Shown: positions 15,540 through 49,366 of the stretch, piece after piece
Position numbering within the stretch: the stretch's first letter is position 1
How the letters are laid out: the number at the start of each line of letters is the position of its first letter
Assembly (NCBI GenBank): GCA_002269645.1
Contig: NIVC01003500.1
Span: forward strand, 1 to 64,000
DNA from: Macrostomum lignano
Taxonomy: Eukaryota
Reading direction: 5' to 3'
DNA length: 64,000 nucleotides
Translations under genes and position numbers: made by a program
The notes under the pieces: model-generated
What the model saw: the letters and a program-made list of their open reading frames with translations, nothing else
Told to the model about the DNA's origin: nothing
The model's database searches: none

Positions 15540-15840
15540 TCACCAGCATTTGCCCACGTTGCACCGCTGTGAGCAGCAGTCTGCATAGTTCCTGCAGTAG
15601 CCCCCGGTTTTTGTGCATTTTTCGGAGCTGCTGCAGGCAGATCCAGAGTCTGCGGTGGGCACAGGTGAGTGAGTGAATGAGTGAGTGAGTGATGGGGTGG
15701 GGAGGCAGCTAGAAAGCTTTGGTGATAAGCAGCTGAAAAAAGCCTAATTAAGGCTCTTAACAGACTCGAAAGCTGAGCTGCTACTTACCAAAAAACATAA
15801 CGGTGAAAACGATTATCATGGCGTATACGTAGAAATTCAT
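15540..15840 (-). CDS. Secreted inhibitor-cystine-knot (knottin, conotoxin-like) peptide precursor, 53 aa
   Basis: Exon 1 15840-15789 (ATG...TTT TTT G|gtaagt), exon 2 15649-15540 (cccaccgcag|AC TCT...TGG TGA). Product MNFYVYAMIIVFTVMFFDSGSACSSSEKCTKTGGYCRNYADCCSQRCNVGKCW. Intron phases match; AATAAA ~100 nt past the stop (near 15440). Confidence 0.85.
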
Positions 15841-17176
15841 TTTAGTCCCTGCAGTATCAAAGTCAAATCTTAAAGAACTTGAGAAAATACTGTTACAATA
15901 TACCGTTCTGAAAATTATAGAAAGCTGGAATAATTTGACATATCAGCCTCTTTAGGGAACTCAGGTTTGCAATGAAAAAAACATCTGTCTATGGTAAAAC
16001 ATAGAAGCAAAGAGGATCAGTTTACATGTAGTTTTTATTACGCCCCAATCAATCTTTAAATGCGCGATTGTCTGATAAATTGATTGATAAATGCGAGCTA
16101 GTCTGGAGTCAGCCGTGTCACAATATTTTGCTACCTCCAAGCACAAAACAACGCAGCAAAATGCTTCTGACAGCATGCTGGCAGTGCAGGCTCTGCATGA
16201 TGTATGTACTTTTGATGAAAACATGAAAAATTTTTATATTCAGAGATAAAAACAAAAAAGCTCAATTAGTGCTTACAATAACGTATGATTGAACTTACGG
16301 TATACTTTCTAATGATTTTTTCACAAAACCCGAGAATCTTCCAAATAAAGTTGGTTATAATACACAAGTTTATCGTGTAAACATTTTCGAATTCAGCGGC
16401 CTAGTCGTCATCAATTTTTAATTCGCAGCCTCCTGACTGATGTAATGTAGACCGTAATTGACAGTGTGGCTAACATGGTTAGGCTGGAAAGCAAGCCTGG
16501 AAAGTCAGTCGGTATCGTGGTTCAAACAGAAAATTCTGAGGTCGGGACGCTAAGATCTAAGTTAAGCATCGTTGGGCTCAGTTTGCTACCGTATCAGGAA
16601 TCAGGATTGGTGGAGGGCCTTATGTACATTACAGTACACACGTCTTAGTGGCTACTAGTACTAGAAGGGAATAAGCCTAACAAAAAAGGCTCATATTCTA
16701 GGCATAAGCCGTAAAGAATGAGGCTTACTTTACTTAACTTTTGTTGTTAGTGTTATGTAATACAAACTGCATTAGTCCGAGTTGGACTAAATTAGACTGC
16801 ATTTTTAATTTAGTCTAGATTTCATTATTTTTTAATTTAATGTTATTATTATAAATATAAATTAATTTGTTGAACTAAGTATATTTTTTATACTTTTTAT
16901 CAAAAGTATGCTTAAGTCTAAGGCGAAGCCGAAGAGTAAGACAATGGGTTTCTAACCATATTTTTATATAGCTCCAATATTATTATGGCAGTGCTTATTC
17001 TCATGGCCCACTGTCCTGTGGCTATGGCTAGCCCCCCTATGCCAATAATGCATTAAAGCAACCAGAAATTTGTTGAGGGGGTGGATTCTGGGGGAGGAAG
17101 CAGTCTACGTGGCAGGATGGCTCTGTTTTTGGCTAAAATTTGCTTGGTCCTCCTGATTTTTTTGTCTATGCCTTTC

Positions 17177-18200
17177 ATACATGCCCAACACCTGTCTAAC
17201 CCATCCAAACTAGATGGGTAAAATGGCTGCCAGCCAAAGTAAGTTGCAAAAATGAAAATGAAAAAATGAAAAATGGGAGAAAAAAGAAAGGAGAGAAAAG
17301 AGAAAAAAGAAAGAAAAAGAGAGGAAAAGATAAAAAGGCAAAAAAGTCATATACAAAGTACCTTTTAAACTTTGTCCAACTCGGAATATTCCAACCATTA
17401 TTCCAACTTGTAATGCAGTTAAATTACAAATAAGAGTAATGGTCGGAATATTTTGACTCTTATTCTGATTGATTATTAAATATAATTGCAAAGTCTAAAT
17501 ATCCTTCTGACTTATTTTGACTCTGACTCATGTCATAATTTAATATGTTGCAAGAGTCTAAATATCATTAATTCCAACTCTTATTCAGGCTGATTATTAA
17601 ATCCATTGCAAGAGTCTAAATCTCATTCTGACTCTTATTTTGACTAATTTATTTAATATGTTGCAAGAGTCTTAATACCATTCCAACTTGATCTTATTCT
17701 TACTTCGACTGATTATTTTAATTACATATTGCAAGAGTATATATCATTCTGACTGTTGAATGTACAATTTTTTACATTTACTTTGACAAAGTATGCATAG
17801 AATAAGGCAAACTTTAAAATAATAATGTTTCCCCAAAATTTTAAAATAAAATAAAGTAAATTAAATTATGCATTGGATTAAGAGTCAAAATGATATTTAG
17901 ACTCTTGCAATTGTATTTAATAATCAGTTGGAATAAGAGTTGCAATATTCTAACCATTAGGCCTAGTCTGACTCGTAATTTAACCACATTATGAGTTGGA
18001 ATAATGGTCAGAATATTCTAAGTCAGACAAAGTTTAAAAGGTTACAAAGTGAAAATTAAGTTACAATTAGGAAAACTAATTGCAATTAAGAGGAACTAAG
18101 TTGCAATCAGAAAGAACTTGCAATTGGAAAAAAAACTAAGTTGCAAATTTATACAAAACTAAGTTGCACCAGATGAGTGAAATTTTGAGGTTAGGCATGT
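17177..18200. mobile_element. ~370 bp MITE-like element, copy 1 (interrupted by a nested MITE)
   Basis: Matches the reverse complement of 19050-19423; short terminal inverted repeats ACATGCCCAAC...GTTAGGCATGT. Confidence 0.7.
17360..18042. mobile_element. Nested MITE with long TIRs and 8-bp TSD TACAAAGT
   Basis: TIR ACCTTTTAAACTTTGTC... at 17360 and reverse complement ending 18042; TACAAAGT at 17352-17359 and 18043-18050. Confidence 0.8.
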
Positions 18201-19049
18201 ATAATGCCTTTATACCCTTGGTTGCGCTATTGCCATAGTGCAATAATGCTTTGCACTAAATGCTAGATTATATAAATTATAATAGCATAGGATAACAGAT
18301 TAACAGAACTCTGCCACAATAATTTCCATGGAAAAGCCATGAGCCTTAGTAAGTAAACATATGTAAAGGACCTTCTATTGAAAAACAGTTTAGATTTTTA
18401 ATAATATAGATATATTCTATTATATATCTCTAGAACTACTTTTCTATTTATTCCTCTAATTGTAAAGACACTTTATAAAGTAACTTTTATATCAATCTAT
18501 TATAATAACAGCTTGTTATATATTATTTTACTATTTTGTCATTTTGTCACATGTCTATTTTTATATGTTAACCATTCTGTCCATAGGCATTTTCATATGA
18601 TTCTAAGCACTGTGCCAAGTGTTGCATTGTACTATGCTGCATTGCACCAAGGGCCACCTCAAAGAAAGTGTGCCACACTGCAAAGTCATTTTACAAATAT
18701 GCCAGATGGCTATCTACCATTTAGCAACTTTTTCCAATAGGGCTATATAACAAACTTATATTATAATAACCAATTACCAAGGAATATTTTATATTATATT
18801 ATACCTTAAATAAGTAGTAGAAGCTAGGTCCAATACTTTGTTTTGTGTGGCATGATGCATTATAATACTTTATTATATATATTATATAACAATTTTTGCA
18901 TTGTAAATGCTATACTCTAGAAAATCTAGTGCATGCCAAATTTTCTAATGTGTATTCTAAAACCTTAGCATGCATAATGTGCAAATTAAAAATTGTGTAG
19001 TTATCAGCATGCAAAATTGCTATATAGTGTGCATATCATAGTATGCTAG

Positions 19050-19423
19050 GCATATATGCCCAACCTCAAAATTTCACCCATCCAGTGCAACTTAGTTTTG
19101 TCTAGATTTGCAACTTAGTTCCTCCCAATTGCAACTTAGTTCCTCCTGATTGCAACTTAGTTCCTCTCAATTGTGACTTAGTTCCCCTAATTACAACTTA
19201 ATTTTCACTTTGTATATCGCTTTTCTTGCTTTTTTCTCTTTTATTCTCTTTCTCTCTCCTCCCTCCTCTCTCTCTTCTCCCTCTTTTCTTTTCATTTTCT
19301 CTTCTCCTTTCTTTCTTCCCCCAATTTTTTGTTTTTTTGCAGTTTTGATTTTGCAACTTACCTTGGCTGGCAGTCATTTCACCTGTCTAGTTTGGACAGG
19401 TCAGATGGGTGTTAGGCATGTGA
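19050..19423. mobile_element. ~370 bp MITE-like element, copy 2 (inverted relative to copy 1)
   Basis: Reverse complement aligns to 17177-17359 plus 18051-18200. Confidence 0.7.
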
Positions 19424-21657: not shown

Positions 21658-24600
21658 ATGGGCGTCCACGGCCTCTGGTCCATCATTCAGCCAACGGCGC
21701 AGCACACCCCGCTTGAGGAGCTGCGCGGCCTCCGAATCGCCATCGACCTGGCCATCTGGGTTGTTGACGACATGCAGACCCAGCGGGAGGCCGCCTGCGC
21801 CATTCCTGGTCGGTTGCATCTGCGCAACCTGCTGTTCAGAACCCTGCACCTGCTCAAGCTGGGCGTCAGGCCGCTCTTTGTTGTGGACGGCGAAGCGCCC
21901 GTCTTGAAGGTGGCGACTATGACTGCCAGATCCCAGCAGATGGCTGGCAAAGGGGCTAAGCCAGGTGAGTTGATTTGGATGTGGGAGAGCGACAGGCAGT
22001 GACAGGCTGTGTAGGGGAGAGTGGCAGGCTGTGTAGGAGAGTGGCAGGCTGTGTAGGGGAGAGTGGCAGGCTGTGTAGGAGAGTGGCAGGCTGTGTAGGA
22101 GAGTGGCAGGCTGTGTAGGAGAGTGGCAGGCTGTGTAGGAGAGTGGCAGGCTGTGTAGGAGAGTGGCAGGCTGTGTAGGGGAGAGTGGCAGGCTGTGTAG
22201 GGGAGAGTGGCAGGCTGTGTAGGGGAGAGTGGCAGGCTGTGTAGGGGAGAGTGGCAGGCTGTGTAGGAGAGTGGCAGGCTGTGTAGGGGAGAGTGGCAGG
22301 CTGTGTAGGGGAGAGTGGCAGGCTGTGTAGGGGAGAGTGGCAGGCAGTGACAGGCTGTGTAGGGGAGAGTGGCAGGCAGTGACAGGCTGTGTAGGGGAGA
22401 GTGGCAGGCAGTGACAGGCTGTGTAGGAGAGAGTGGCAGGCAGTGACAGGCTGTGTAGGGGAGAGTGGCAGGCAGTGACAGGCTGTGTAGGAGAGAGTGG
22501 CAGGCTGTGTAGTGGAGAGTGGCTGGCAGTGGCAGGCTGTGTAGTGGAGAGTGGCTGGCAGTGACTGACAGTTTAAATCGCTCATCCAACAGTCACAGAG
22601 CGGCCGGTGGACCCGGAGCGGATCCGCAAGCGGGCCAGATTCCGCCGCCTGTTGCGCGGCGACTGCTGCCGCCTGCTCGACCTGCTCGGCGTGCCGCACG
22701 TGGAGAGCCCTGGCGAGGCGGAGAGTCTGGCCGCGCTGCTCAACAACCGCGGAGTTGTGGACGCCGTCATCACCAACGATGGCGACGCGTTTCTCTACGG
22801 GGCCAAGCGGGTCCTGCGCAACTTCAGGTTCGAGTTGGAGTTTAAGCTGCTGTGAACCCAGATTGAGAGTCGGGTGGGACTGAGCACTGAGCAATGACCC
22901 TGAAATTCCCAGATTCCCAGAGATTTGACGTCTGGGAATCTAACTAGGAGATTTGAGCTCTAGGAATCATAAGAGGGAATTATATTTTCCCTCTGAAAAT
23001 CTCACCCAGAGATTTTCTCTCTCGGAATCTCACCCAGACTTGGCCTCTGGAAATCTCACCCAGAGATTTGGCCTCTGGAAATACCACCCAGAGATTTGGC
23101 CTCTGGAAATCTCACCCAGAGACTTGGCCTTTGGGAATCTCACCCAGATATTTGACCTCTAGAAATCTCACCCAGAGCTTTGACCTCTGAGAATCTCACC
23201 AAGATTGACATCTGAGAATCTCACCCAGAGATTTGACCTCTGAGAATCTCACCAAGAGATTTGACATCTGAGAATCTCACACAGTGATTTTCTCTCTGGG
23301 AATCTCACCCAGAGACTTGGCCTTTGGGAATCTCACCCAGAGATTTGACCTCTGAGAATCTCACCAAGATTGACATCTGAGAATCTCACCCAGAGATTTG
23401 ACCTCTGAGAATCTCACCCAGTGATTTGACATCTGAGAATCTCACCTAGTGATTTTCCCTCTGGAAATCTCACCCTATCCTAAATTTGTCCTTAAGATTT
23501 GACTCCTTGCCAGACTCCATTCAAATCAATTTTGTAACTGTGCCATCGCTTGCTCACTCGCCCCCTCGAGCAGCATGGACAGCCGTGACGCCCACGTGGA
23601 CTGGTTCGAGAGCTGCCGCCTGGCCACTCAGCTGGGCCTCGGCCGGGACCGCCTGGTGGCTCTGGCGCTGCTGCTCGGCTGCGACTACGCGCCAGGCGGA
23701 ACTCCGGGCGTCGGGCCAGCCCTGGCGCTGAAGTTCTTCCGCTGCCTGCCGCCCGGTGCCGACGCCACTGCCAAACTGCTGGAGGCCGGCGGCGGAGGAG
23801 GCGATGCCGACGGTTGCGGCGTGCTTCGCCGGTTCATCGCCGCGTCGGCCACGTCGGCTGCCGCACCGGCCATCGTCAGCGAATTCCTGGAGGCCAACCG
23901 AAGCTGGCCGCTGCTTACCGAGGATCGGGTGGTGTGGCGCCGGCCCAGGCCGCTGGAGCTGGTCCGCTTCTGCCTGGACAGGCTGGAATGGGCCGAGGAG
24001 TACACCGTTGCCAAGCTGCTGCCGCTGCTGTGCATCTGGGATGAGCAGCTGCCCGAAGGTGCGAGTGCCGGCTGCTCGGTGGGCCCGAGGCCCCGGAGAA
24101 TCCTGGCTGAGCGAATCCGGGCCGGCGTGCCCTGCTACGAGGTGAGATGCACCCTGAGATTGAAATTTCCCCTGAGGTGCTTGATCCCACAGGATTTGAT
24201 GCCATGGAACTCCCTACTATAGGATTCTATCCTATAGGAAATATGGTTCTATTTTTTAGGGTTCTATCCTATGGGTTCTATCCTTTGGTCTATCCTATGG
24301 TGTTCTATCCTATGGGTTCTATCCTTTGGTCTATCCTATGGGTTCTATCCTTTGGTCTATCCTATGGTGTTCTATCCTATGGTCTACCCTATGGTGTTCT
24401 ATTCTATGGTCTACCCTATGGTGTCCTATCCTATGGTGTTCTATCCTATGGTGTTCTCTCCTATGGTGTTCTATCCTATGGTGTTCTATCTTATGGGTTC
24501 TATCTTATGGGGTTCCATCCTATGGTGTTCTATCCTATTGTGTTCTATCCTATGGTGTTCTATCCTATCGGGTTCTATCCTATGGTGTTCTATCCTATCG

Positions 24601-26024
24601 GGTTCTATCCTATGGTGTTCTATCCTATCGGATTCTATCCTACGAGTGTATTAGATTTTGATCAGATTTCAGCACTGGGCAACTATGCGACTCTATTCTA
24701 TGCAGTATTATATGGTATCCATGTTAACGGATTTGTTTCTATCTGATTGAACTCTATCTTATTGAATTCTATCTTATAAAGTTGTATCAATGGGGATTTA
24801 GTTTTTTGGATAATATTTTTATACCTCTTCTTCAAGGTATTAAGTCTAAAAAGTTTTATTGCCCCCCCCCGCACCCAGGTGGAATTCCACAAGCTCGAGT
24901 TCGACATTTGGACGGAATCGGAGTTCTACACTCTGTGCGTGCCCCGGCACCCGTTTTGCCAGCTGCACCGGGACATGCTGGCCGGCTTCGAGCAGCTGAG
25001 GCTGCAGGAGAAGGAGGACAAGCTGAAAGCAAAGCAGGAGCAACAGAAGCAGAAAAAGAAGAAAAAGAAGCCAACAGAGAACCGGAAGCCGGCACCGAAG
25101 CCGGGCGAAGCTGCTGTGAAGATTGACAAATTTTTCATTTCTCAGCCGCTGCCGCCGGAGCCGCTCGTCCGCCCCCGGCGCCGCAGCGTCTTGGTCGATT
25201 CTCTTTCGGACTTGTTCGCCGACATCTCCTTGTCGACGTCCGCCGCTGAACTTCCGGTTCCGGCAGAGTCGGACAGTGATAATTCCCGGCGGCCGTTCGG
25301 CCACCTGTTCGTTGATTTTCGACACGCTGAGGCGGCTCTACAGCCTCCCATCTGCCAGTTCCGTCTGGAATCTTCGCTGTTGAATGACTCGCTTGTATCC
25401 GCCCACGCATCAGTTCCGGCATCAGCTCCAGCGTCCATCCACGCATCGGCTCCAGCATCCGCCCACGCATCGTCTCCAGCACCCGCCCACGCATCTGCTC
25501 CAGCACCCGCCCACGCATCGGCTCCAGCATCCTCCCACGCATCGGCTCCAGCATCCGCCCACGCATCGTCTCCAGCACCCGCCCACGCATCTGCTCCAGC
25601 ACCCGCCCACGCATCGGCTCCAGCATCCTCCCACGCATCTGCTCTAGCATCCGCCCACGCATCTGCTCCAGCATCCTCCCACGCATCGGCTCCAGCATCT
25701 GGCCACGCATCGGCTTTAGCATCCTCCCACGCATCGGCTCTAGCATCCTCCCACGCATCGGCTCCAGTATCCGCCCACATATCGGCTCGGGTATCCGCCC
25801 ACATATCGGCTCGGATATCCGCCCACGCATCGGCCCCAGCATCCGCCCACGCATCGACTCCAGCCGTGCCGCCAGTTCGCGGTAGAATTCCGCCGCTACC
25901 GCAACTGGACGACAGCTTCGATAAGTTCGAAACGCCGCCCCGATTAACTGCCAGACTGCAGCTGCTGTACAACTGTAACCAAGCCGTTGGCCAAGCGCTG
26001 GAGGAGGCGTTCCAGTCTCAGTGA
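21658..26024 (+). CDS. GEN1: Holliday junction resolvase / flap endonuclease GEN homolog 1 (XPG/Rad2 family)
   Basis: Exons 21658-21964, 22599-22827, 23574-24141, 24879-26024 with GT-AG sites and matching phases. XPG-N MGVHGLW...IDLAIW...FVVDG; XPG-I EAESLAALL...TNDGDAFLYGAKRVLRNF; H2TH LLGCDYAPGGTPGVG; chromodomain-like region; disordered tail. Confidence 0.92.
21995..22565. repeat. Intronic minisatellite, ~20-22 bp (GTGGCAGGCTGTGTAGGGGAGA), GEN1 intron 1
   Basis: Visible tandem units. Confidence 0.95.
22990..23470. repeat. Intronic minisatellite, ~28 bp, GEN1 intron 2
   Basis: CTCTGAGAATCTCACCCAGAGATTTGAC units. Confidence 0.9.
24230..24645. repeat. Intronic minisatellite, 15 bp, GEN1 intron 3
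   Basis: CTATCCTATGGTGTT units. Confidence 0.9.
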
Positions 26025-26370: not shown

Positions 26371-26736
26371 GTAAGTACGCGTTTTAAGAATTAGTGAATG
26401 GCTCATCTGCCTATAGTTTTTTTATCTTTTAGGGCATTTCAGCTATTTAGTGCCGGCTTGAAATTAAGTCGCATTTCCGATTCGAACGTTTGTATTGTTC
26501 CAGCATTTAAAATAGCAACATTTAAATTGCTTGCTAACTTTTCTATCAAAACCTTAATGAATAAAGCACAATTTGAATTATTTTTATATAAAATTTCCTC
26601 TTGTTACTTTGCCTTGATATTAAAGCACTATCCAAATACAGTACAATGCAAATTGGTAAAAAAGTCATATTTGAAACTAAAATTAATTCATGCGCATCAT
26701 ACTACTGCTAAACTACTGTCAGCTACCAGTTCAATT

Positions 26737-29413
26737 ATGGTCCGAGGTGCCGCCCAACTTCGTGCGTGGCTTGCCTGCCTTTGCGTCTGCTTAGTTGTCT
26801 GCGCTTTTGTCTGCGGTCAGGCGGTCAGCGGTCAATCAAGCGGTCAGGCCCTACCATCAAGCGGTCAGGCCCCGCCATCAAGCGGTCAGGCCCCGCCATC
26901 AAGCGGTCAGGTCCCGCCATCAAACAGTCAGGCCCCGCCATCAAGCGGTCTGGCCCCGCCATCAAGCGGTCAGGTCCCGCCATCGAACAGTCAGGCCCCG
27001 CCATCAAGCGGTCAGGCCCCGCCATCAAGCGGTCAGGTCCCGCCATCGAACAGTCAGGCCCCGCCATCAAGCGGTCAGGCCCCACCATCAAACGGTCAGG
27101 TCCCGCCATTGAACAGTCAGGCCCCGCCTTCAAGCGGTCAGACTGCGCCATCAAGCGGTCAGACTGCGCCATCAAGCGGTCAGACTGCGCAATCAAGCGG
27201 TCAGACTGCGCCATCAAGCGTTCAGACTGCGCCATCAAGCGGTCAGACTGCGCCATCAAGCGGTCAGGCCCCGCCATCAAGCGGTCAGGACCTGCCATCA
27301 AGTGGTCAGGCCCCGCCATCAAAAAGCGTCCAGTCTCCGCCCGTGCCCAGCGCTCAGATTCAGGCAACGCACGGTCGTTCGCCGCAGCCGGGTCCCGATG
27401 GCCAGCGAATGCCGCCGCCACCTCCGCGGGGGCCGCCGCCGCCACCTCCGCGGGGGCCGCCGCCGCCGCCTCGTGGGCCGCCACCGCCCCGCCGGATTCC
27501 CAGCTTCCTACTGCCGTCAGCCGAGTCTAGCGACTCCTTCGACGGCGTGGACTCCTCCTTTGTCTTTGTTCTCCCTAGCCGTGGCCGTCAGTGCTTTCAT
27601 CATCGAACAGCGAAGTCGTTCCAGTTCGAGTTTCGAGTTCTGTACGGCGGCCGGCTGGACATCGATGTGTACATTGTCGGTCCGGGCGGCCGCGTGGCCT
27701 ACGAGAGTCGGGAACGGCGCCAGGGCGGCTTCTTGGCGCCGGCCGCTCCGGAGTCGGCGGTCCCGGGCGGCGAGTCGCCGGTGCACACGGTGTGCCTGGA
27801 CAACCGGCACTCCAGCTGGTACGATAAAGTTGTGGACTTCAGGATCGAGCTGCAGCGCAAGCGCATCAACGTCAGCGGAGGGGGCGGCGAGATGCTGGAG
27901 CCTCTGCCCGAGGCCATGACTGCTGAGCTGAAGCGCTTGGACATCAGCTGGTCGCACTTTCTGGTTGGTTTCCCTGATCCTTGGCAGCTCAGTGCCTCAG
28001 ACTGGTCATCAGATTGGACTTGAAAACCTGAAGTTTCCATAGCTGGACGAGATAAATATCCCAAGGCTAAGACTTCCGTATCTAGTGCTCAAATGAGAAG
28101 TTCAATGTCAATATCTCCATAGAGCTGAGATTTCCAAGTTTGAGACGTCCGCAGCAGAAAATCAGATGAAAATTCGTTCAATACTGAGATTCTCAAGGTT
28201 TGGGGGGTTCCATAGACTGACAAAAAAGTTTGAAGGCTGACACTTCCTACACAAATCCTGCTATGAATATCTCATGGCAGGATTAAGGTGAGAATTCCGA
28301 GGTTAAAATTTCGATAGTTAAGATTTCCAGAATTGAATTCTCCGAAGGATTTACAATGTTGACTCGTGTGGAGATTTCCAAGGTTGAGAATTCGGGGCTA
28401 AGATTTCTAACACTGAGATTTCCAGGGTTGAGATTTTCAGGGTTGAGATTTCCAGGGTTGAGATTTTCAGGGTTGAGAATTCCAGGGTTGAGATTTCTAG
28501 AGTTGAGATTTCCTAAATTGAGATTTCCAAGGTGGAGATTTCCAGGGTTGAGATTTCCAGGGTTGAAATTTCTAGAGTTGAGATTTCCTAAATTGAGATT
28601 TCCAGGGTTGAGATTTTCAGGGTTGAGATTTCTAGGGTTAAGAAGTCCAGGGTTGAAATTTCTAGAGTTGAGATTTCCAGGGTTGAGATTTCCAGGGTTG
28701 AGATTTTCAGGGTTGAGATTTCTAGGGTTAAGAAGTCCAGGGTTGAAATTTCTAGAGTTGAGATTTCCAGGGTTGAGATTTCCAGGGTTGAGATTTTCAG
28801 GGTTGAGATTTCTAGGGTTAAGAAGTCCAGGGTTGAAATTTCTAGAGTTGAGATTTCCAGGGTTGAGATTTCCAGGGTTGAGATTTCCAGGGTTGAGATT
28901 TCAAGGGTTGAGATTTCCAGGGTTGAAATTTCTAGAGTTGAGATTTCCTGGGTTGAGATTTCCAAGGTTGAGATTTCCAGGGTTGAGATTTCTAGAGTTG
29001 AGATTTCCTGGGTTGAGATTTCCAGGGTTGAGATTTCCAGGGTTGAGATTTCTAGAGTTGAGATTTCCAGGGTTTAGATTTCTAGAGTTGAGATTTCCAT
29101 AGACTGAGAATAGTACATGAAGATCTGAGGTCCCCGGTCACCACCGCCCCTCCATCCCCAGACGCTGACGTGGGCCGTGGAGGACAATCTGCATCGCAGC
29201 GCCAGCATCCAGCGGGAGTTCCGTGTCGACGAGACCCGCGACCGGCTGGCTATGGAAGACAGCGCGGCCCGGGTGAGCCGCTGGTCCGCCCTGCAGCTGG
29301 CGGTCATGCTGGGCGTGTCCGGCCTCCAGGTGCTGATGATCCGCTCCCTGTTCGATGAGAAGTCCGTGCTGCATCGGGTCTGGCGAGTCCGCGGCTCGTT
29401 CCTTATTGGCTGA
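26737..29413 (+). CDS. TMED: p24/emp24/gp25L (TMED) family protein, paralog A, with long SSGQAPP repeat insert
   Basis: Exons 26737-27963 and 29162-29413. Signal peptide MVRGAAQLRAWLACLCVCLVVCAFVCG; GOLD domain FVFVLPSRGRQCFHH...FRVLYGGRLDIDVYIVGPGG...VCLDNRHSSWYDKVVDF; coiled coil, TM helix LQLAVMLGVSGLQVLMI, tail RSLFDEK. Confidence 0.9.
28380..29100. repeat. Intronic minisatellite, 15 bp (GTTGAGATTTCCAGG)
   Basis: Visible tandem units. Confidence 0.95.
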
Positions 29414-29929: not shown

Positions 29930-30660
29930 TAACAGTCTTGTGTGTACCTTAGATACATGTACAACCTTGTGCACTTTAGCAACAGGTTTTTGCACCTTAG
30001 CGTGCACCTTAGCAACAGCCTTGTGTACCTTAGCAACAGCCTTGTGTACCTTAGCAACAGCCTTGTGTACCTTAGCAACAGCCTTGTGAACTTTAATTAG
30101 CAGCAGCCTTGTGTACCTTAGCAACAGCCTTGTGTACCTTAGCAACAGCCTTGTGTACCTTAGCAACAGCCTTGTGTACCTTAGCAACAGCCTTGTGTAC
30201 CTTAGCAACAGCCTTGTGTACCTTAGCAACAGCCTTGTGTACCTTAGCAACAGCCTTGTGTACCTTAGCAACAGCCTTGTGTAGCTTAGCCACAGCCTTG
30301 TGTACCTTAGCAACAGCCTTGTGAACTTTAATTAGCAGCAGCCTTGTGTACCTTAGCAACAGCCTTGTGTACCTTAGCAACAGCCTTGTGAACTTTAATT
30401 AGCAGCAGCCTTGTGTACCTTAGCAACAGCCTTGTGTACCTTAGCAGCAGCCTTGTGTACCTTAGCAACAGCCTTGTGTACCTTAGCAACAGCCTTGTGT
30501 ACCTTAGCAACAGCCTTGTGTACCTTAGCAACAGCCTTGTGTACCTTAGCAACAGCCTTGTGTAGCTTAGCCACAGCCTTGTGTACCTTAGCAACAGCCT
30601 TGTGTACTTTGACTACAGCCTTGTGCGACTTAACACCAGCCTTGTGCACCTTAGCAACAG
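29930..30660. repeat. Intergenic minisatellite, 21 bp (CTTAGCAACAGCCTTGTGTAC)
   Basis: Visible tandem units. Confidence 0.95.
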
Positions 30661-30744
30661 CTTAATCACATACCGACAGACAACTAGTTTTACTATAGTG
30701 GATTAATAAGCTTATTATCTGCTATCTTTTCAGCTGTCATTTTA

Positions 30745-33318
30745 ATGGCTCGACTGAAGTTCCTGCTGCTTGAGGCTGCGGCGCTGCTGCTGCTGACTGC
30801 TTGCTGCATCGCTCAGCAGCCTCCTCAGGCTGTGCCTCCATCTAGTGAGCAGGCTGCAGCGCAACAGCCCCCACCAACTCAGCATCACCAGCCTCCGCCC
30901 GAGCATAATCAGCCTCCACCTGCCCATCAACAGCCCCCGCCTGACTACCAACAGCCACCGCCTGTCCACCAGCAGCAGCCGCCTGTCCACCAACAGCCAC
31001 CGCCTGTCCACCAGCAGCAGCCGCCTGTCCACCAACAGCCACCGCCTGTCCACCAGCAGCCGCCTGTCCACCAGCAGCAGCCGCCTGTCCACCAGCAGCC
31101 ACCACCTGCCAACCAGCAGCAGCCGCCTGTCCAGCAGCAACCACCGCCTGCCCACCAGCAGCAGCCGCCTGTCCACCAGCAGCAGCAGCCACCACCTGTC
31201 CACCAACAGCTGCCGCCTGTCCAGCAGCAGCCACCACCCGTCCAGCAACAGCCACCGCCTGTCCACCAACAGCAGCCGCCTGTCCAGCAACAGCCACCGC
31301 CTGTCCACCAACAGCCTCCAGAGCAGCAGCAGCAGCAGCAGTACCAGCCTCCACCCGAGCATCATCAGCCACCTCACCCGGAGACACAAGAATCCGTTTC
31401 TACCCATCATCGGCAGCCACCGCCGCCGCCGCCGCGGGATTCCCGCGACAGGCCGGACGATGGCCATCAAGGAGGCAAGCGGGTGCCCTCTGTGCTGCTG
31501 CCATCGGAGCCTAACGAATTCGACATGCGGTCCATCTCGTTTGTGTACCGCCTGCCCAGCCGGGGGAAGCAGTGCTTTTATCATAAGGCATCTAGCAACT
31601 TCACCTTTGAGTATCAGGTAAGAAGATTGGATTATATGTATTTGTGGCCTAAATTGTTTGTGTTTGTGTATTTTGCAGCTACGTTTTGGGTAGGTTTGTG
31701 TACTAGCTCGAAGGGCTGTGCAGGTTTGCGTGGGCGTGTGTACTCTAAGGCCATGCAGGTTTGCGTGGGCGTGTGTACTCTAAGGCCGTGCAGGTTTGCG
31801 TGGGTGTGTGTACTCTAAGGCCGTGCAGGTTTGGGTGGGTGTGTGTACTCTAATGCCGTGTTGGTTGCGTGGGTGTGTGTATTTCAGTGCTACTTAAGCT
31901 TCCTGGACATGTGTAACTGTAAGGCCATGCATAATTGCCTAGCCGTGTGTGACTTTAAGTCCCTGCTGGCCTGTCTGATCGTGTGTACTCTAATATTATT
32001 CAAGTTTGCACGGGCGTTTCTTACTTTAAACCTGTTTGTTTGGGTTTGCACGGGTGTGTGCTTTATATATTTCTCGTAGATGTTGTGTAGACGTGCGCAA
32101 TTTAAGGCCGTGTAGTTTTGCGTGGGCGTTTTAATGCATTATAACCGCTGTAAGCTGCAATAACCAAGCCGGCCCTGCCCTGTACATTCCAACACTCGCC
32201 CAGGTGACAAGCGGCGGCAGTTTGGACATTGACGTCTTCATCAATTCGCCAGGCGGCAAGCTGGCGTTCGATCGGCGCGGCAAAGCCTACGGCGAGGCGA
32301 GTTTTGCATTCGACCCGGCCAAATCGACTGCCGACATGCGCCTGCCGGCCTACATGATCTGCCTGGACAACCGGTACTCTTCCTGGCACGACAAGCTCGT
32401 GTACTTTAACATCGATGTCGAACAGGGCCGCGAAGGCCTCCGGCCTGGCGCCGATCAGCTGTCCGAGGGACTGCGGACCAGTCTCCGCGAGATGGAGCTT
32501 TCCTGGGAGGAGTTTTACGTAAGTGGCTGCCAAATTGGTGTACATTGGTGTATGCACATTGGTGTGTGAACATTGGTGTATGTACATTTGTGTGTGTAAA
32601 TTGTTGTATGTACATTGGTGTGTGTACATTTGTGTATGTATACTGGTGTGTGTATATTAGTGTACTTACACTGGTATGTGTGTACATTGGTGTGTGTACA
32701 TTTGTGTATGTATACTGGTGTGTGTATATTAGTGTACTTACACTGGAATGTGTGTACATTGGTGTGTGTACATTGTTGTGTGTACATTGGTGTATGTACA
32801 TTGATTTGCGTACATTGGTGAATGTACATTGGTGTATGTACACTGGTGTCTGTACATTGGTGTGTGTGTGCATTGGTGTATGTACATTGATTTGCGTATA
32901 TTGTTGTATGTACACTGGTGTCTGTACATTGGTGTGTGTGTGTGCATTGGTGTATGTACATTGATGAATGTACATTGGTGTGTTTGTTTGTAAATTTCTG
33001 TACATGTATTTACAGTAGCTGGATGTGAGTACTCCATCAGCTGTTTCGAATAACTATAACCCCCCCCCCCCGCCGCAGAAATCCACGGACAAGGTGGAGG
33101 ACCACCTGCTGCGCACCATCTACTTGCTGAGCAAGAGCCGCAACAACGAGGCCCGCGATCGCATGATGATGGACGCGAACAATGCCCGGGTGAGCACCTG
33201 GTCCATCTTCCAGCTGGTGGTGATGCTGTTCGTGTCCGGCATCCAGGTGATGATGATCCGCTCCCTGTTCGACGACAAGTCCCGCCTGCACCGGGTGTGG
33301 AAGGCGGGAAAGTCTTAG
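30745..33318 (+). CDS. TMED: p24/emp24/gp25L (TMED) family protein, paralog B, with long QQPPPVH repeat insert
   Basis: Exons 30745-31617, 32204-32518, 33079-33318. Signal peptide MARLKFLLLEAAALLLLTACCIA; GOLD FVYRLPSRGKQCFYH...GGSLDIDVFINSPGG...ICLDNRYSSWHDKLVYF; TM FQLVVMLFVSGIQVMMI; tail RSLFDDKSRLHRVWKAGKS. Confidence 0.9.
32530..32990. repeat. TG-rich degenerate intronic repeat
   Basis: GTACATTGGTGT(A/G)T-type units. Confidence 0.85.
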
Positions 33319-36269: not shown

Positions 36270-37470
36270 CATAGCTCCATAGCAACGGGGTAATTTGACT
36301 TGAACACTATCTTAAAGCTCCATAGCAACGGGGTAATTTAACACTATCTTAAAGCGCCATAGCAACGGGGTAATTTGACTTGAACACTATCTTAAAGCTC
36401 CATAGCAACGGGGTAATTTGATTTAAACACTATCTTAAAGCTCCATAGCAACGGGGTAATTTGACTTGAACACTATCTTAAAGCTCCATAGCAACGGGGT
36501 AATTTGATTTAAACACTATCTTAAAGCTCCATAGCAACGGGGTAATTTGATTTAAACACTATCTTAAAGCTCCATAGCAACGGGGTAATTTGACTTGAAC
36601 ACTATCTTAAAGCTCCATAGCAACGGGGTAATTTAACACTATCTTAAAGCGCCATAGCAACGGGGTAATTTGACTTGAACACTATCTTAAAGCTCCATAG
36701 CAACGGGGTAATTTGATTTAAACACTATCTTAAAGCTCCATAGCAACGGGGTAATTTGACACTATCTTAAAGCTCCATAGCAACGGGGTAATTTGACTTG
36801 AACACTATCTTAAAGCTCCATAGCAACGGGGTAATTTGATTTAAACACTATCTTAAAGCTCCATAGCAACGGGGTAATTTGATTTAAACACTATCTTAAA
36901 GCTCCATAGCAACGGGGTAATTTGATTTGAACACTATCTTAAAGCTCCATAGCAACGGGGTAATTTGATTTAAACACTGTCTTAAAGCTCCATAGCAACG
37001 GGGTAATTTGATTTAAACACTATCTTAAAGCTCCATAGCAACGGGGTAATTTGACTTGAACAGTGTCTCAGAGCTCCATAGCAACGGGGTAATTTGATTT
37101 AAACACTATCTTAAAGCTCCATAGCAACGGGGTAATTTGATTTAAACACTATCTTAAAGCTCCATAGCAACGGGGTAATTTGATTTGAACACTATCTTAA
37201 AGCTCCATAGCAACGGGGTAATTTGATTTAAACACTGTCTTAAAGCTCCATAGCAACGGGGTAATTTGATTTAAACACTATCTTAAAGCTCCATAGCAAC
37301 GGGGTAATTTGACTTGAACAGTGTCTCAGAGCTCCATAGCAACGGGGTAATTTGATTTAAACACTATCTTAAAGCTCCATAGCAACGGGGTAATTTGATT
37401 TAAACAGTGTCTCAGAGCTCCATAGCAACGGGGTAATTTGACTTGAACAGTGTCTCAGAGCTCCATAGCA
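36270..37470. repeat. Minisatellite, 43 bp unit x ~28
   Basis: CTCCATAGCAACGGGGTAATTTGATTTAAACACTATCTTAAAG units, head-to-tail without spacers. Confidence 0.95.
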
Positions 37471-37589
37471 ACATAAGGCTTGTGCTGGTGGATACCGTAT
37501 TACGCCTTCTTCATCAAAGCTCCAATCCCGCATTCCTGTTGAGTTTCGAGCTCTTCAGAGCAGCAGCAGCCACAACAGCAGCTCGCAGG

Positions 37590-40500
37590 ATGGCTCAGGC
37601 AGCGGCCCAGTCCTCTAGAAGCAGCAGCAGTCAGGCCAGCAACCGCCTGCACCTGTCCCGGTCGCCTTACCTGGCCCAGCACGCCAACGACCCGGTCCAC
37701 TGGCAGCCCTGGGGGGACGAAGCGTTCGCGCTGGCCAAGGCCAGGGACCAGCTGGTGTTCCTGAGCATTGGCTACTCCACCTGCCACTGGTGCCACGTCA
37801 TGCACAGGGAGTCCTTTCAGAATGCCGACATTGCCAAGCTGCTTAATGACAATTTTGTCAGCATCAAGGTGAGCTGCTGGGTTGGAGTATGCTGATCTAC
37901 ATATATCTAAATTCCCCATCCCTTGCATACCCCTAGCTTCTAAATTCCCCATCCTTTGCATACCCCTAGCTTCTAAATTCCCCATCCCTTGCATACCCCT
38001 AGCTTCTAAATTCCCCATCCTTTGCATACCCCTAGCTTCTAAATTCCCCATCCCTTGCATACCCCTAGCTTCTAAATTCCCCATCCCTTGCATACCCCTA
38101 GCTTCTAAATTCTCCATCCCTTGCATACCCCTAGCTTCTAAATTCCCCATCCCTTGCATACCCCTAGCTTCTAAATTCTCCATCCCTTGCATACCCCTAG
38201 CTTCTAAATTCCCCATCCCTTGCATACCCCTAGCTTCTAAATTCTCCATCCCTTGCATACCCCTAGCTTCTAAATTCCCCATCCCTTGCATACCCCTAGC
38301 TTCTAAATTCCCCATCCCTTGCATAACCACCAGTCTCTAAATTCCCCATCCTTTGCATACCCCTAGCTTCTAAATTCCCCATCCCTTGCATACCACTAGC
38401 TTCTAAATTCCCCATCCCTTGCATACCCCTAGCTTCTAAACTCCCCATCCCTTGCATACCCCTAGCTTCTAAATTCTCCACCCCTTGCATAACTACCAGC
38501 CTCTAAATTCCCCATCCTTTGCATAACCACCAGCCTCTAAATTCCCCATCCCTTGCATACCCCTAGCTTCTAAATTCCCCATCCTTTGGATAACCACTAG
38601 CCTCTAAATTCCCCATCCCATAAAAGCTTCAGATAAATCCTCCCTGTCCCTTCCCCGAACTCCCTAATCCCTGAATTCCTTATCTAAATTCTCCAGCCTC
38701 TAAATCCCGTCACGTCTGAAATACGCCATCAATAATGCTTATGCCCAACTAAAATCTGCGCCTCCATTCCCGCAGTTGGACCGCGAGGAGCGGCCGGACG
38801 TGGACCGGGTGTACATGAACTTCGTGCTGGCCCTGGGAGTCGGCGGTGGCTGGCCCCTGTCCGTCTGGCTGACCCCGGACAAGCGGCCTATCTTTGGCGG
38901 CACCTACTTTCCGCCTGAGAACAGGTACTTCGGCCGGCCCGGGTTCGCGTCTGTCCTGCAGTCTCTGTCCGACAGCTGGAGGAACAAAAGGGACCAGGTG
39001 CGATGCGTGTGCTCAGTGCTTATCGGGAGTGTTCAGTGTGCTCAGTGCTTATCGGGAGTGTTCAGTGTGCTCAGTGCTTATCGGGAGTGTTCAGTGTGCT
39101 CAGTGCTTATCGGGAGTGTTCAGTGTGCTCAGTGCTTATCGGGAGTATTCAGTGTGCTCAGTGCTTATCGAGAGTGATCGGTAGTGATCAGTGTGCTCAT
39201 ACGCTTATTGGAAGAGATCAGTGTGCTCAGGCGCTTATTGGAAGAGATCAGTGTGCTCAGACGCTTATTGGAAGAGATCAGTGTGCTCAGGCGCTTATTG
39301 GAAGAGATCAGTGTGCTCAGACGCTTATTGGAAGAGATCAGTGTGCTCAGACGCTTATTGGAAGAGATCAGTGTGCTCAGACCCTTATTGAAAGAGATCA
39401 GTGTGCTCAGACCCTTATTGAAAGAGATCAGTGTGCTCAGACGCTTATTGGAAGAGATCAGTGTGCTCAGGCGCTTATTGGAAGAGATCAGTGTGCTCTG
39501 GCGCTTATTGGCAGAGATCAGTGTGCTCTGGCGCTTATTGGAAGAGATCAGTGTGCTCAGACGCTTTCAAAGTGTTCAAACCGCTGTCTCCTCTAACCCA
39601 CCCTAGGTGGAGACGCAGGGCACGGAGATTCTGGCCGCCCTCCGCAAACACGCGGTGCCGCCAGCGCCGCCGTCCGCGGCCGCCTTCGACCCGAGCCGGC
39701 CGGCCGCCCTCTGCCTCCGCCAGCTGCGCGACCGGTTCGACTCGGAGCTGGGCGGCTTCGGCCGGGCCCCCAAATTCCCGCAGCCGTCGCTGCTGGCCTT
39801 CCTGCTGCGCCTGGCCGGCCTGCGGTCCGCCGCCGACCCGGCCGAGTCCGCCGAGGCCCTGGCGATGTGCCGCCTCACGCTAGACTGCATGGCCCGCGGC
39901 GGCATCCACGACCACGTCAACGGCGGCTTCCACCGCTACTCCACGGACGCCAAGTGGCACGTGCCGCACTTTGAGAAGATGCTGTACGACCAGGCCCAGC
40001 TGTGCTCCACCTTCGCTGTCACCTCGCGTCTCTGCGCCAAGGAGGACGCCGGGACGGCCAAGGAGCTCGCAGACACGGCCGTGGGCATTGTGGAGTACGT
40101 CTGTCGGGAGCTGTCACACCCGGCCGGCGGCTTCTACAGCGCCCAGGACGCTGACTCGCTGCCGGAGGGCTCGGCTGAGGATGCCGCTGGCGGCCACGGG
40201 CACGGCAAGAAGGAGGGCGCCTTCTGCGTGTGGACCTGGGGACAGCTGGCCGCCGCGCTGGAGGGCGGCTCAATTGGCGACGTGCCCTATTTGAAGGTGA
40301 GCGGGAAGATCCAGATCCTCAGTTGCTAAGCCAGCCTCCCAGATTCTCAGTTGCTAAGCCAGCCTCCCAGATCCTCAGTTGCTAAGCCAGCCTCCCAGAT
40401 CCTCAGTTGCTGGGCCAGCCTTTCAGACCCTCAGTTGCTGGACCAGTCTTTCAGATCCACAGTTGCTAGTAGGCCAGCCTCCCAGATCCTCAGTTGCTGA

Positions 40501-43829: not shown

Positions 43830-44830
43830 AACCTCTCCAACTCATTCAGAATCTCTCCAACTCATCCAGAACCTCTCCAACTCATTCAGAATCTCTCCAA
43901 CTCACCCAGAACCTCTCCAACTCATTCAGAACCTCTCCAACTCACCCAGAATCTCTCCAACTCATTCAGAATCTCTCCAACTCACCCAGAATCTCTCCAG
44001 CTCATTCAGAATCTCTCCAACTCACCCAGAACCTCTCCAACTCATTCAGAACCTCTCCAACTCACCCAGAACCTCTCCAACTCATCCAGAACCTCTCCAA
44101 CTCACCCAGAACCTCTCCAACTCATTCAGAACCTCTCCAACTCATCCATGACCTCTCCAACTCACCCAGAACCTCTCCAACTCATCCATGACCTCTCCAA
44201 CTCATTCAGAACCTCTCCAACTCACCCAGAACCTCTCCAACTCACCCAGAACCTCTCCAACTCATTCAGAACCTCTCCAACTCATTCAGAACCTCTCCAA
44301 CTCACCCAGAACCTCTCCAACTCATTCAGAATCTCTCCAACTCATCCATGACCTCTCCAACTCATTCAGAATCTCTCCAACTCACCCAGAATCTCTCCAA
44401 CTCATTCAGAATCTCTCCAACTCATCCAGAACCTCTCCAACTCATTCAGAACCTCTCCAACTCATTCATGACCTCTCCAACTCATTCAGAACCTCTCCAA
44501 CTCATTCAGAACCTCTCCAACTCATTCAGAACCTCTCCAACTCACCCAGAACCTCTCCAACTCATTCAGAATCTCTCCAACTCACCCAGAACCTCTCCAA
44601 CTCATTCAGAACCTCTCCAACTCATTCAGAATCTCTCCAACTCATTCAGAACCTCTCCAACTCATTCAGAACCTCTCCAACTCATTCAGAACCTCTCCAA
44701 CTCACCCAGAACCTCTCCAACTCATTCAGAACCTCTCCAACTCATTCAGAACCTCTCCAACTCATTCAGAACCTCTCCAACTCATTCAGAACCTCTCCAA
44801 CTCACCCAGAACCTCTCCAACTCATTCAGT
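43830..44830. repeat. Minisatellite, 20 bp x ~50
   Basis: GAACCTCTCCAACTCATTCA units. Confidence 0.95.
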
Positions 44831-45651: not shown

Positions 45652-47078
45652 GTGAGCTGCAGTCAGGGTGTCTCTGGTTTATCAGTGAGCTGCAGTCAGG
45701 GTGTCTCTGGTTTATCAGTGAGCTGCAGTCAGGGTGTCTCTGGTTTATCAGTGAGCTGCAGTCAGGGTGTCTCTGGTTTATCAGTGAGCTGCAGTCAGGG
45801 TGTCTCTGGTTTATCAGTGAGCTGCAGTCAGGGTGTCTCTGGTTTATCAGTGAGCTGCAGTCTGAGTGTCTCTGGTTTATCAGTGAGCTGCAGTCAGGGT
45901 GTCTCTGGTTTATCAGTGAGCTGCAGTCAGGGTGTCTCTGGTTTATCAGTGAGCTGCAGTCTGAGTGTCTCTGGTTTATCAGTGAGCTGCAGTCAGGGTG
46001 TCTCTGGTTTATCAGTGAGCTGCAGTCAGGGTGTCTCTGGTTTATCAGTGAGCTGCAGTCAGGGTGTCTCTGGTTTATCAGTGAGCTGCAGTCTGAGTGT
46101 CTCTGGTTTATCAGTGAGCTGCAGTCAGGGTGTCTCTGGTTTATCAGTGAGCTGCAGTCTGAGTGTCTCTGGTTTATCAGTGAGCTGCAGTCTGAGTGTC
46201 TCTGGTTTATCAGTGAGCTGCAGTCAGGGTGTCTCTGGTTTATCAGTGAGCTGCAGTCTGAGTGTCTCTGGTTTATCAGTGAGCTGCAGTCAGGGTGTCT
46301 CTGGTTTATCAGTGAGCTGCAGTCTGAGTGTCTCTGGTTTATCAGTGAGCTGCAGTCAGGGTGTCTCTGGTTTATCAGTGAGCTGCAGTCAGGGTGTCTC
46401 TGGTTTATCAGTGAGCTGCAGTCTGAGTGTCTCTGGTTTATCAGTGAGCTGCAGTCAGGGTGTCTCTGGTTTATCAGTGAGCTGCAGTCAGGGTGTCTCT
46501 GGTTTATCGGTGAGCTGCAGTCAGGGTGTCTCTGGTTTATCAGTGAGCTGCAGTCAGGGTGTCTCTGGTTTATCGGTGAGCTGCAGTCAGGGTGTCTCTG
46601 GTTTATCAGTGAGCTGCAGTCTGAGTGTCTCTGGTTTATCAGTGAGCTGCAGTCTTAAGAGTCTCTGGTTTATCAGTGAGCTGCAGTCTTAAGAGTCTCT
46701 GGTTTATCAGTGAGCTGCAGTCTTAAGAGTCTCTGGTTTATCAGTGAGCTGCAGTCAGGGTGTCTCTGGTTTATCAGTGAGCTGCAGTCTTAAGAGTCTC
46801 TGGTTTATCAGTGAGCTGCAGTCTTAAGAGTCTCTGGTTTATCAGTGAGCTGCAGTCTTAAGAGTCTCTGGTTTATCAGTGAGCTGCAGTCTTAAGAGTC
46901 TCTGGTTTATCAGTGAGCTGCAGTCTTAAGAGTCTCTGGTTTATCAGTGAGCTGCAGTCTTAAGAGTCTCTGGTTTATCAGTGAGCTGCAGTCTTAAGAG
47001 TCTCTGGTTTATCAGTGAGCTGCAGTCAGGGTGTCTCTGGTTTATCAGTGAGCTGCAGTCTTAAGAGTCTCTGGTTTA
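45652..47078. repeat. Minisatellite, 33 bp x ~43, three sequence variants, abutting GATC
   Basis: GTGAGCTGCAGTC(AGGGT/TGAGT/TTAAG..)..TCTCTGGTTTATCA units. Confidence 0.95.
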
Positions 47079-47130
47079 TCTCCTTCTGCTGCGTGCACTG
47101 CCACGTGCACTGTTGTTGCTAGGGCCGCAG

Positions 47131-48313: not shown

Positions 48314-49204
48314 TAGACAGACAGACAGACAGACAGAAAGACACTAACACAGACAGACTGACAGACAGACAGAAAGACGGAAAGACAGACAGACAGACAG
48401 ACAGCCTTGCTTCTATTCGTCACGATTCTGATTCCCACAGCCGCCAGTCCCCATCAGTGCCCACCGGCCCCTAGCCGGGATTCGAGTCCTGGACCTCACC
48501 CGGGTGCTTGCCGGGCCCTACTGCTCAATGATCCTGGGCGATATGGGCGCAGATGTTATCAAGGTGGAGCGGCCGGGCGGCGGGGACGAGACCCGGCAGT
48601 GGGGGCCGCCGTTCGCGGCCGAGGACTCCGTGTACTTCCTGAGTGTCAACCGCAACAAGCGCAGCGTCTGCCTGGACTTCGGCCAACCGGCCGGGGCCGA
48701 CCTGGTCCGCCGGCTGTCCCGGCGCTGCGACGTCCTGCTGGAGAACTTCGTGCCCGGCAAGCTGGCGAAGCGCGGGCTGGACTTTGCCTCGCTGAGCGCC
48801 CAGAATCCCGGCCTCATCTACTGCAGCATCTCCGGCTTCGGCCAGTCCGGGCCGTGGCGCCGGCGGGCCGGCTACGACGTCGCCGCGGCTGCCATCGGCG
48901 GCTTCCTCGGCATCACCGGCGAGCCCGACGGTCCGCCCGTCCGGGCCGGGGTGGCCGTCACGGACCTGTCCACCGGCCTGTATGCCCTGTCCGCCATCCT
49001 GGCCGCCCTGTACCGGCGGCGGACGGCCGAGAGTCTGGGGGAGGTCGGCCGGGGCTGCTGGATCGACGCCAACCTGCTGGACACCCAGGTGGCCACAATG
49101 TCGCATGTGGCTGCCAGCTTCCTGCACACCGGTTAGGGGCTCAGAGTCTGTCTGTCTGTCTGTCCGTCTGTCTGCCTGTCTGTCTGTCTGTCTGTCTGTC
49201 GGCC

Positions 49205-49244
<40 letters not shown>

Positions 49245-49331
49245 AGCCTGTCAGTCAGCCTGTCTTAGTGTCTGTCTGTCTGCCCTGCCCTGTCTGTCTG
49301 TCTGTCTTGTCTGTCTGTCTGTCTGTCTTAG

Positions 49332-49366
<35 letters not shown>

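Follow-up and report, generated by a model that had tools for sequence, protein, structure and literature searches.

A candidate two-exon gene for a secreted knottin-type peptide in the flatworm Macrostomum lignano

The minus strand of the window—the 64,000-nucleotide stretch of Macrostomum lignano DNA analyzed here—carries a short, cysteine-rich open frame that raises two questions: does it belong to a genuine gene for a secreted cystine-knot peptide, and how does this peptide relate to the conotoxins that it resembles? An earlier note had proposed an unannotated, conotoxin-like gene of two exons at this locus. The explanation favored here, with moderate confidence, is a real two-exon gene that encodes the precursor of a small, secreted knottin with three disulfides. 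The resemblance to conotoxins is one of scaffold and not of family membership because no curated threshold is reached, the closest sequence is myxobacterial, and the best animal match differs in its intron layout.

Gene model on the minus strand

The candidate gene features an ATG, a leader exon of 52 nt, a GTAAGT donor, a phase-1 join, a second exon, and a downstream AATAAA, all of which had been proposed in the earlier note and are found on the minus strand at exactly those positions (Table 1). The gene had been described as missing from the ORF track, and the mechanical ORF list indeed holds no entry of at least 70 aa at this locus. The peptide encoded by exon 1 would supply the n- and h-regions of a putative signal peptide. 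Within the 600 nt upstream, exon 1 is the sole combination of an ATG, a hydrophobic leader, and a donor of this type. The acceptor is pyrimidine-rich, as had been noted: C and T make up 72% of the final 40 nt of the intron, and the (ACTC)n run provides CTCAC motifs that resemble branch points. Ahead of the knot, the open frame contains six AG dinucleotides. As read from the sequence, the phase-1 donor fits one of these six, namely the acceptor at 15650, and the two-exon model is the only phase-compatible one. Taken singly, the AATAAA is weak evidence in AT-rich DNA.

Table 1. Positions of the features of the candidate gene and of minisatellite arrays in the window; the entries for CTGCAG and AATAAA are sequence readings
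Feature	Position	Strand	Description
CTGCAG	15849..15854	(-)	AG at 15850-15849, 8 nt before the ATG at 15840
ATG	15840	(-)	A at -3; first ATG past an in-frame stop lying 35 codons upstream
Exon 1, coding part	15789..15840	(-)	52 nt (ATG, 16 codons, and 1 base); encodes MNFYVYAMIIVFTVMFF
Donor GTAAGT	15788-15783	(-)	Perfect match; start of the 139-nt intron
Intron	15650..15788	(-)	139 nt, phase 1; 3' end is CCCACCGCAG
(ACTC)n microsatellite	~15692-15664	(-)	Intronic; makes up most of the pyrimidine-rich tract
Acceptor CCGCAG	ends 15650	(-)	3' end of the 139-nt intron
Exon 2, coding part	15540..15649	(-)	Putative signal-peptide c-region DSGSA, pre-knot CSSSEK, knot, TGA
Knot core CTKTGGYCRNYADCCSQRCNVGKCW	15543..15617	(-)	Spacing C-6-C-5-CC-3-C-4-C and C-terminal Trp
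TGA stop	15542-15540	(-)	One residue past Cys VI (C-terminal Trp)
AATAAA	15436..15441	(-)	Candidate polyadenylation signal, ~100 nt past the stop
Minisatellites, among others	21998-22565, 23000-23475, 24261-24642, 25419-25864, 26835-27322, 28371-29099		
Minisatellites, continued	30002-31319, 36273-37472, 37906-38619, 43830-44829, 45652-47080, 50283-50993		

The sequence directly upstream of the ATG bears on an alternative gene model, in which exon 2 would be part of a different or larger gene whose upstream exons join the CTGCAG acceptor or another leader, with the hydrophobic stretch lying internally. The CTGCAG is a good acceptor-like sequence with no stop between it and the ATG and may, speculatively, be the 3' site at which a 5'UTR or a spliced leader is attached by splicing or trans-splicing. 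Genes of M. lignano are often trans-spliced, with trans-splicing sites in ~35-39% of the transcripts, and have about five introns on average; in the genome-guided transcriptome Mlig_RNA_3_7_DV1, trans-splice and poly(A) sites are defined by experiment (PMC5730564). However, the DNA upstream shows no convincing coding exon before the opposite-strand XPG_N gene at 21658, the ATG lies in good context, and the layout of signal, four to six residues, knot, and stop resembles the N-termini of dipteran precursors. A different or larger gene is considered improbable, and the gene model of two coding exons is used in the following.

Predicted precursor and coding signal

Splicing as modeled would yield a product of 53 aa, MNFYVYAMIIVFTVMFFDSGSACSSSEKCTKTGGYCRNYADCCSQRCNVGKCW. 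Exon 1 would contribute the hydrophobic part of the signal peptide—which is interrupted by the phase-1 intron—and exon 2 the cleavage region and the whole knot. The leader consists of a 15-residue hydrophobic core with a mean Kyte-Doolittle value of 2.57, followed by DSGSA/C with small residues at -3 and -1, and is devoid of a basic n-region. The -3/-1 rule permits cleavage after Ala22, Cys23, or Ser24. The mature peptide is predicted to comprise 25-31 residues with a net charge of +3 and a pI of ~8.6. Neither a dibasic site nor a propeptide is present in the precursor, and six residues separate the predicted cleavage site from Cys I.

The six Cys residues of CTKTGGYCRNYADCCSQRCNVGKC follow the order C-C-CC-C-C with short loops at a spacing of 6-5-0-3-4, which is the cysteine arrangement of knottins, whose domains measure 25-40 residues. 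This spacing had been reported in the earlier note together with a seventh Cys at the predicted cleavage site, and both are present, the seventh Cys being residue 23. The precursor hence carries an odd number of Cys residues, and Cys23 may be cut off or stay unpaired because it sits at or next to the predicted cleavage site. The loops carry the ICK-type consensus: a Gly in loop 1, an aromatic residue (Tyr) before Cys II, an Asp before the CC pair, and a Ser after it. Upon signal cleavage, the mildly basic peptide would form three disulfides and fold into a compact, protease-resistant knot. In the knotted topology that defines knottins, these bonds would link the Cys residues as I-IV, II-V, and III-VI, the third one passing through the ring. 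This knot may act outside the cell by tight binding to the surface of a target protein or of a membrane.

The structure of the peptide was predicted by AlphaFold with an alignment of insect knottins (alignment A1) and features a mean pLDDT of 80.8 and ~91 over the knot core; the single-sequence prediction is unconfident with a pLDDT of 54. The alignment-guided model is not independent evidence because its confidence leans on the assumed insect relatives. In a Foldseek search against the PDB, the leading matches of this model are all knottins—kappa-SrXIA, U3-scytotoxin-Sth1a, and omega-atracotoxin-Hv1a—with probabilities of 0.85-0.97, TM-scores of 0.6-0.8, and E-values of 0.15-0.8, the latter not being significant because the peptide is so short. 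The rmsd between the candidate model and U3-scytotoxin-Sth1a is 0.5 Å over 25 columns, and plant protease-inhibitor knottins of the SOTI-III type also occur among the structural matches. With its spacing, the usual loop consensus, and a model that matches only knottins in the PDB, the candidate bears out the ICK-type cysteine framework that the earlier note had assigned to it.

Could such a frame arise accidentally in a repeat-rich genome, with the splice and leader signals being coincidental? The loose ICK cysteine pattern occurs three times in the real window as compared with 0.02 times per shuffled window. The two further matches, at 31035-31118 (-) and 33113-33181 (-), are located in non-genic sequence in or beside GC-rich tandem repeats (minisatellites) and give zero score against a knottin profile, i.e., they are false positives. 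As these two repeat-derived matches show, cysteine spacing alone is not a reliable criterion in this genome; in addition, AATAAA and the AG and GT dinucleotides are common in AT-rich DNA. The profile itself, however, separates the candidate from such matches. A profile HMM built from 18 dipteran knottin domains with the candidate left out was run against the 1,358 six-frame ORFs of the window, and the candidate ORF is the sole match at 27.2 bits (E 2e-7), the runner-up reaching 6.9 bits. When all residues except the Cys are permuted, the score falls to 5.2 +/- 4.7 bits from 30.6 bits for the unshuffled candidate, a value attained by none of 2000 such shuffles; hence, the loop residues also carry signal.

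The leader and the base composition point in the same direction. In dinucleotide shuffles of the 600 nt upstream, an ATG with a hydrophobic leader and GTAAGT is encountered in 0.6%, and a comparable leader with the relaxed donor GTRAG in 2.4%. The stop follows directly past Cys VI and the Trp. The GC content of the candidate coding sequence rises over the codon positions from 0.30 via 0.49 to 0.66, with 0.33-0.44 in the flanks, and Cys is encoded by TGC in 7/7 cases in the candidate and in 19/19 cases in the confirmed coding segments of the window. The codon bias of the candidate thus runs the organism's way. The joint probability of these features is very low, their nonrandomness is established statistically, and a chance ORF is very unlikely.

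An alternative to an active gene is a silent or decaying copy, that is, a young pseudogene or an unexpressed duplicate of a knottin family that is active elsewhere in the highly duplicated genome. The GC3 of the candidate, 0.66, lies below the 0.77-0.88 of the confirmed genes of the window, the seventh Cys is odd, and the locus lies in AT-rich, repeat-laden intergenic DNA near a foldback-like inverted repeat. Against this, the frame, the start, the stop, both splice sites, and all six knot Cys are intact; frameshifts and premature stops amount to zero; and the loop consensus is well kept. A silent copy is therefore regarded as unlikely, and an active two-exon gene as the better explanation of the locus.

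Relation to known knottins

A word-indexed protein search with the 53-aa precursor gave zero candidates. Neither an orthologue nor a paralogue turned up in the protein and contig collections that were covered, among them the M. lignano proteome of UniRef; as far as these collections reach, the description of the gene as unannotated agrees with this result. The search for paralogues that the earlier note had suggested was performed within the window, where the locus was compared with all remaining sequence by BLASTN and TBLASTN, and found none. Exact-sequence look-ups in contigs returned no record of the GTG-started exon-2 ORF, of the upstream 87-aa ORF, or of the XPG_N first exon. In Pfam, no family reaches its gathering score with either the precursor or the mature peptide. 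The weak matches of the mature peptide are four conotoxin families only, all of them below threshold: Conotoxin_I2 with 17.5 bits (cut-off 27), Conotoxin (O) with 14.4 (25.1), Toxin_19 with 11.6 (23.2), and Toxin_18 with 10.6 (24.3). In the literature searched, knottins or ICK-type conotoxin-like peptides were not found reported for Macrostomum, and the peptide strings are absent; the sole "conotoxin-like" protein reported in a planarian toxin preprint is of the CAP type.

The library-wide HMMER scan covered 1.84 billion representatives. Its best matches are dipteran multi-knottin precursors annotated as "phenoloxidase inhibitor-like," with 46 bits and an E-value of 3e-7 for the repeats summed. 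Cys-repeat proteins from bacteria (MopE and RTX types) score nearly as well, at library-wide E-values of 1e-5 to 1e-7, and because these unrelated proteins reach similar values, library-wide E-values are not proof of homology. The profile from alignment A1, in which the candidate is aligned with insect knottin domains, matches the PDB entry 6PX7 ("Venom polypeptide") at 8e-10. Classical ICK toxins—U2-cyrtautoxin, atracotoxin-Hv1, kappa-PVIIA, and Alo3—are matched weakly, as are omega-MVIIA (E 0.04) and nemertide alpha-1 (E 0.4). The profile search with alignment A2 gave four marginal, uninformative matches.

The dipteran precursors, namely those of Uranotaenia lowii (XP_055597338.1), Anopheles darlingi (A0A2M4CIE0), and Simulium nigrimanum (D1FQ65), are the best animal match. 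Their domains share with the candidate the framework C-6-C-5-CC-3-C-(4 or 6)-C and 28-45% identity to individual domains. The candidate follows the consensus xKCxxxGEYCxxxxDCCSxxC...C of dipteran and 6PX7-type knottins with 27.2-30.6 bits, and in both the dipteran precursors and the candidate, a signal peptide, putative in the case of the candidate, is followed by the first knot after three to six residues. However, the dipteran precursors comprise three to six tandem knots (P0121-P0130) joined by NRFG-type linkers, whereas the candidate comprises one knot. The genes are also built differently: In the Uranotaenia lowii gene (L001:2001-18938, CM056650.1), all six of the six introns are in phase 0 at GEY/C and split each knot, and the signal peptide is free of introns, whereas the candidate has an unsplit knot and a single phase-1 intron, which lies inside the putative signal peptide. 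Because of these differing intron positions, orthology with the dipteran genes is not supported. The exons of the Uranotaenia lowii gene begin at Cys II of one knot and end with loop 1 of the following one, an odd register for a repeat protein.

The annotation of these matches raises a further alternative: The gene would be real, and its peptide would be an endogenous regulator—for example, a signaling ligand or a peptide that inhibits a proteolytic or phenoloxidase-like enzyme. The best animal matches are "phenoloxidase inhibitor-like" and not venom proteins, and the SOTI-III protease-inhibitor knottins among the structural matches may be read in the same way. M. lignano is cultured on diatoms, and a prey-paralyzing toxin is therefore not obviously needed. 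The mosquito gene, however, is multidomain with a phase-0 intron within each knot, and the scaffold tells little about the target. The transfer of function from phenoloxidase inhibitors is unsupported because orthology is unsupported. An endogenous regulator appears rather unlikely, and a secreted knottin with a role in defense is preferred, as set out below.

The conotoxins of the O and I2 types (PF02950, PF17557, PF08087, and PF08088) share with the candidate the order C-C-CC-C-C, near-equal loop lengths, a small size, and a basic character. Omega-conotoxin MVIIA has the spacing C-6-C-6-CC-3-C-4-C and, like the candidate, ends in GKC; loop 2 of the candidate is one residue shorter. In contrast, only positions 47-74 of 75 of the Conotoxin Pfam model align, leaving the signal of the candidate unmatched, and the propeptide is absent. 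The O-superfamily conotoxin genes have three exons (signal, pro, and mature), whereas the candidate has two. The conotoxin hosts are venomous molluscs, whereas the candidate host is a flatworm.

Closer to the host, knottin-type peptides are already known in parasitic flatworms. The UPF0506 knottins (PF11703, a family of flatworms and nematodes; Schistosoma, Schistocephalus, and Opisthorchis) are secreted, of the cysteine-knot type, and likewise of uncharted role (PMC8400842). They share with the candidate the phylum and, as far as predicted for the latter, the character of secreted cysteine-knot-type peptides; PF11703 gives no match to the candidate, with the precursor at E up to 1 or with the mature peptide at E up to 10. 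Knottin-like peptides are also known from nonvenomous lophotrochozoans: CRP-I of Mytilus is secreted, has the array C(X3-6)C(X1-7)CC(X3-4)C(X3-5)C, and is suspected to function in defense (PMC10138031). A CRP-I gene comprises four exons, the last of which encodes the whole mature peptide; the signal and the propeptide, which ends in KR or RR, are conserved (PMC10138031). The spacing 6-5-0-3-4 of the candidate fits the CRP-I cysteine ranges, the likeness being judged by the published array. The candidate likewise encodes the whole mature peptide in its last exon, but with two coding exons and no dibasic site as compared with the four exons and the dibasic site of CRP-I. A third soft-bodied spiralian case is nemertide alpha-1 (PDB 6ENA), a knottin from ribbon-worm mucus with ~31 residues and an ICK framework like that of the candidate; its match with profile A1 is not significant, and homology to the candidate is not implied. 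The nemertide is a proven toxin.

The highest identity to the candidate knot found anywhere in the searches belongs to a bacterial module. A back-translated pattern scan of JGI metagenomes yielded two high-GC contigs (L002 and L003) with a Cys-rich ORF that contains CTPVGASCGGNGDCCSQRCNAGTC. This module of Polyangiaceae/Myxococcales has the identical spacing C-6-C-5-CC-3-C-4-C and shares 14/24 residues (58%) with the candidate knot. The myxobacterial protein is long, high in GC, and contains many fused Cys modules; unlike the candidate gene, its gene lacks an intron as well as a eukaryotic signal exon, and its codon usage is different. Despite the 58% identity, horizontal transfer from myxobacteria is rejected in view of the intron, the separate signal exon, and the host-like codon usage of the candidate. 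The likeness almost certainly reflects either convergence or simply a general property of the scaffold. The motif is thus found more than once among unrelated lineages, and "most likely convergent" is the safest reading; this phrase had been used in the earlier note for the relation to conotoxins, and the sub-threshold Pfam scores and an equal or better myxobacterial match are in line with it. The myxobacterial Cys-rich ORFs are located at L002:55-444 (+) and L003:6-1454 (+), with relatives in further Polyangiaceae/Myxococcales genomes (L004-L010), and such bacterial "knottin-like" tandem modules may merit study in their own right.

Opposed to convergence is the view of the candidate as a true homologue of the arthropod knottins of the phenoloxidase-inhibitor and asilidin types as well as of the mollusc O-superfamily conotoxins. 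These would together form an ancient protostome family, and free-living macrostomids would have in the candidate their first bioactive knottin, one that acts on ion channels or microbes. Under true homology, ancient endogenous secreted knottins would have been repeatedly recruited into venom ICK toxins. This view is judged quite doubtful, and convergence on a common scaffold is maintained.

Possible role and genomic surroundings

As a best guess, the peptide would be part of a gland or epidermal defense secretion with antimicrobial or antipredator action. A reproductive-tract peptide or an endogenous modulator of enzymes or channels is less likely and ranks below the defense secretion. The scaffold says little about the target, and the target is not inferable from it. 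The knottin scaffold occurs across plants, fungi, many animal phyla, and, judging by the myxobacterial modules, proteins of bacteria, and knowledge of the scaffold itself is unchanged by the candidate. If expressed, the gene would add a knottin-type secreted peptide to M. lignano, a free-living flatworm that is genetically tractable and a transgenic model. It would further imply that the annotation of the M. lignano genome misses short spliced peptide genes. An expressed gene would also offer a model for the native role of a knottin—be it in defense, reproduction, or regulation—by means of RNAi, transgenesis, and in situ hybridization, and one further small disulfide-rich scaffold for pharmacological screening.

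The candidate is located in an AT-rich gap of ~9 kb between genes and, except for the intronic (ACTC)n, outside minisatellites. The gap is bordered by sequence without gene assignment below ~12.7 kb and by the plus-strand XPG_N (GEN1-like) gene from 21658. Rfam and tRNA scans of the window found nothing. Within the gap, positions 17179-19421 carry nested long inverted repeats with arms of 95, 79, and 69 nt that are 80-90% complementary; tandem repeats of 21 and 55 nt are found internally. The region, 1.3 kb upstream of the candidate, resembles a foldback or MITE-like element.

The GEN1/XPG-like nuclease gene spans 21658-24222 (+), with XPG_N in its first exon at 21658-22002 and a weak XPG_I match at 23575-24222; its interior holds arrays of 22-mer and 28-mer minisatellites (21998-22565 and 23000-23475). 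A gene of CoA-transferase family III is found at 48407-50044 (+). Two M. lignano UniProt entries match its exon at 49400-50041, A0A1I8HNM0 with 98% identity and a second one with 92%; the window thus derives from M. lignano or from one of its very close relatives, which bears out the "probable flatworm" of the earlier note. The matched blocks are 48528-49085 and 49478-49978, and between them, (GTCT)n with ~80 copies (49146-49469) remains open in frame. Outside flatworms, the matches listed for this gene have 34-48% identity and come from bacteria, metagenomes, and one fungus.

The window is extremely dense in minisatellites (Table 1), whose units measure 14-46 bp and are repeated up to 50 times at 80-97% identity. 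As a consequence of these arrays, many of the longest mechanical ORFs are spurious; examples are the ORF of LRFPG repeats at 28356-29102 and the one at 24879-26024, which contains the ASAPASAH repeat. In a 541-aa ORF at 26398-28023 (+), residues 388-488 match the first 100 positions of the EMP24/GOLD domain; as the upstream part of this ORF is a 21-mer minisatellite (26835-27322), the actual exon probably covers far less of it.
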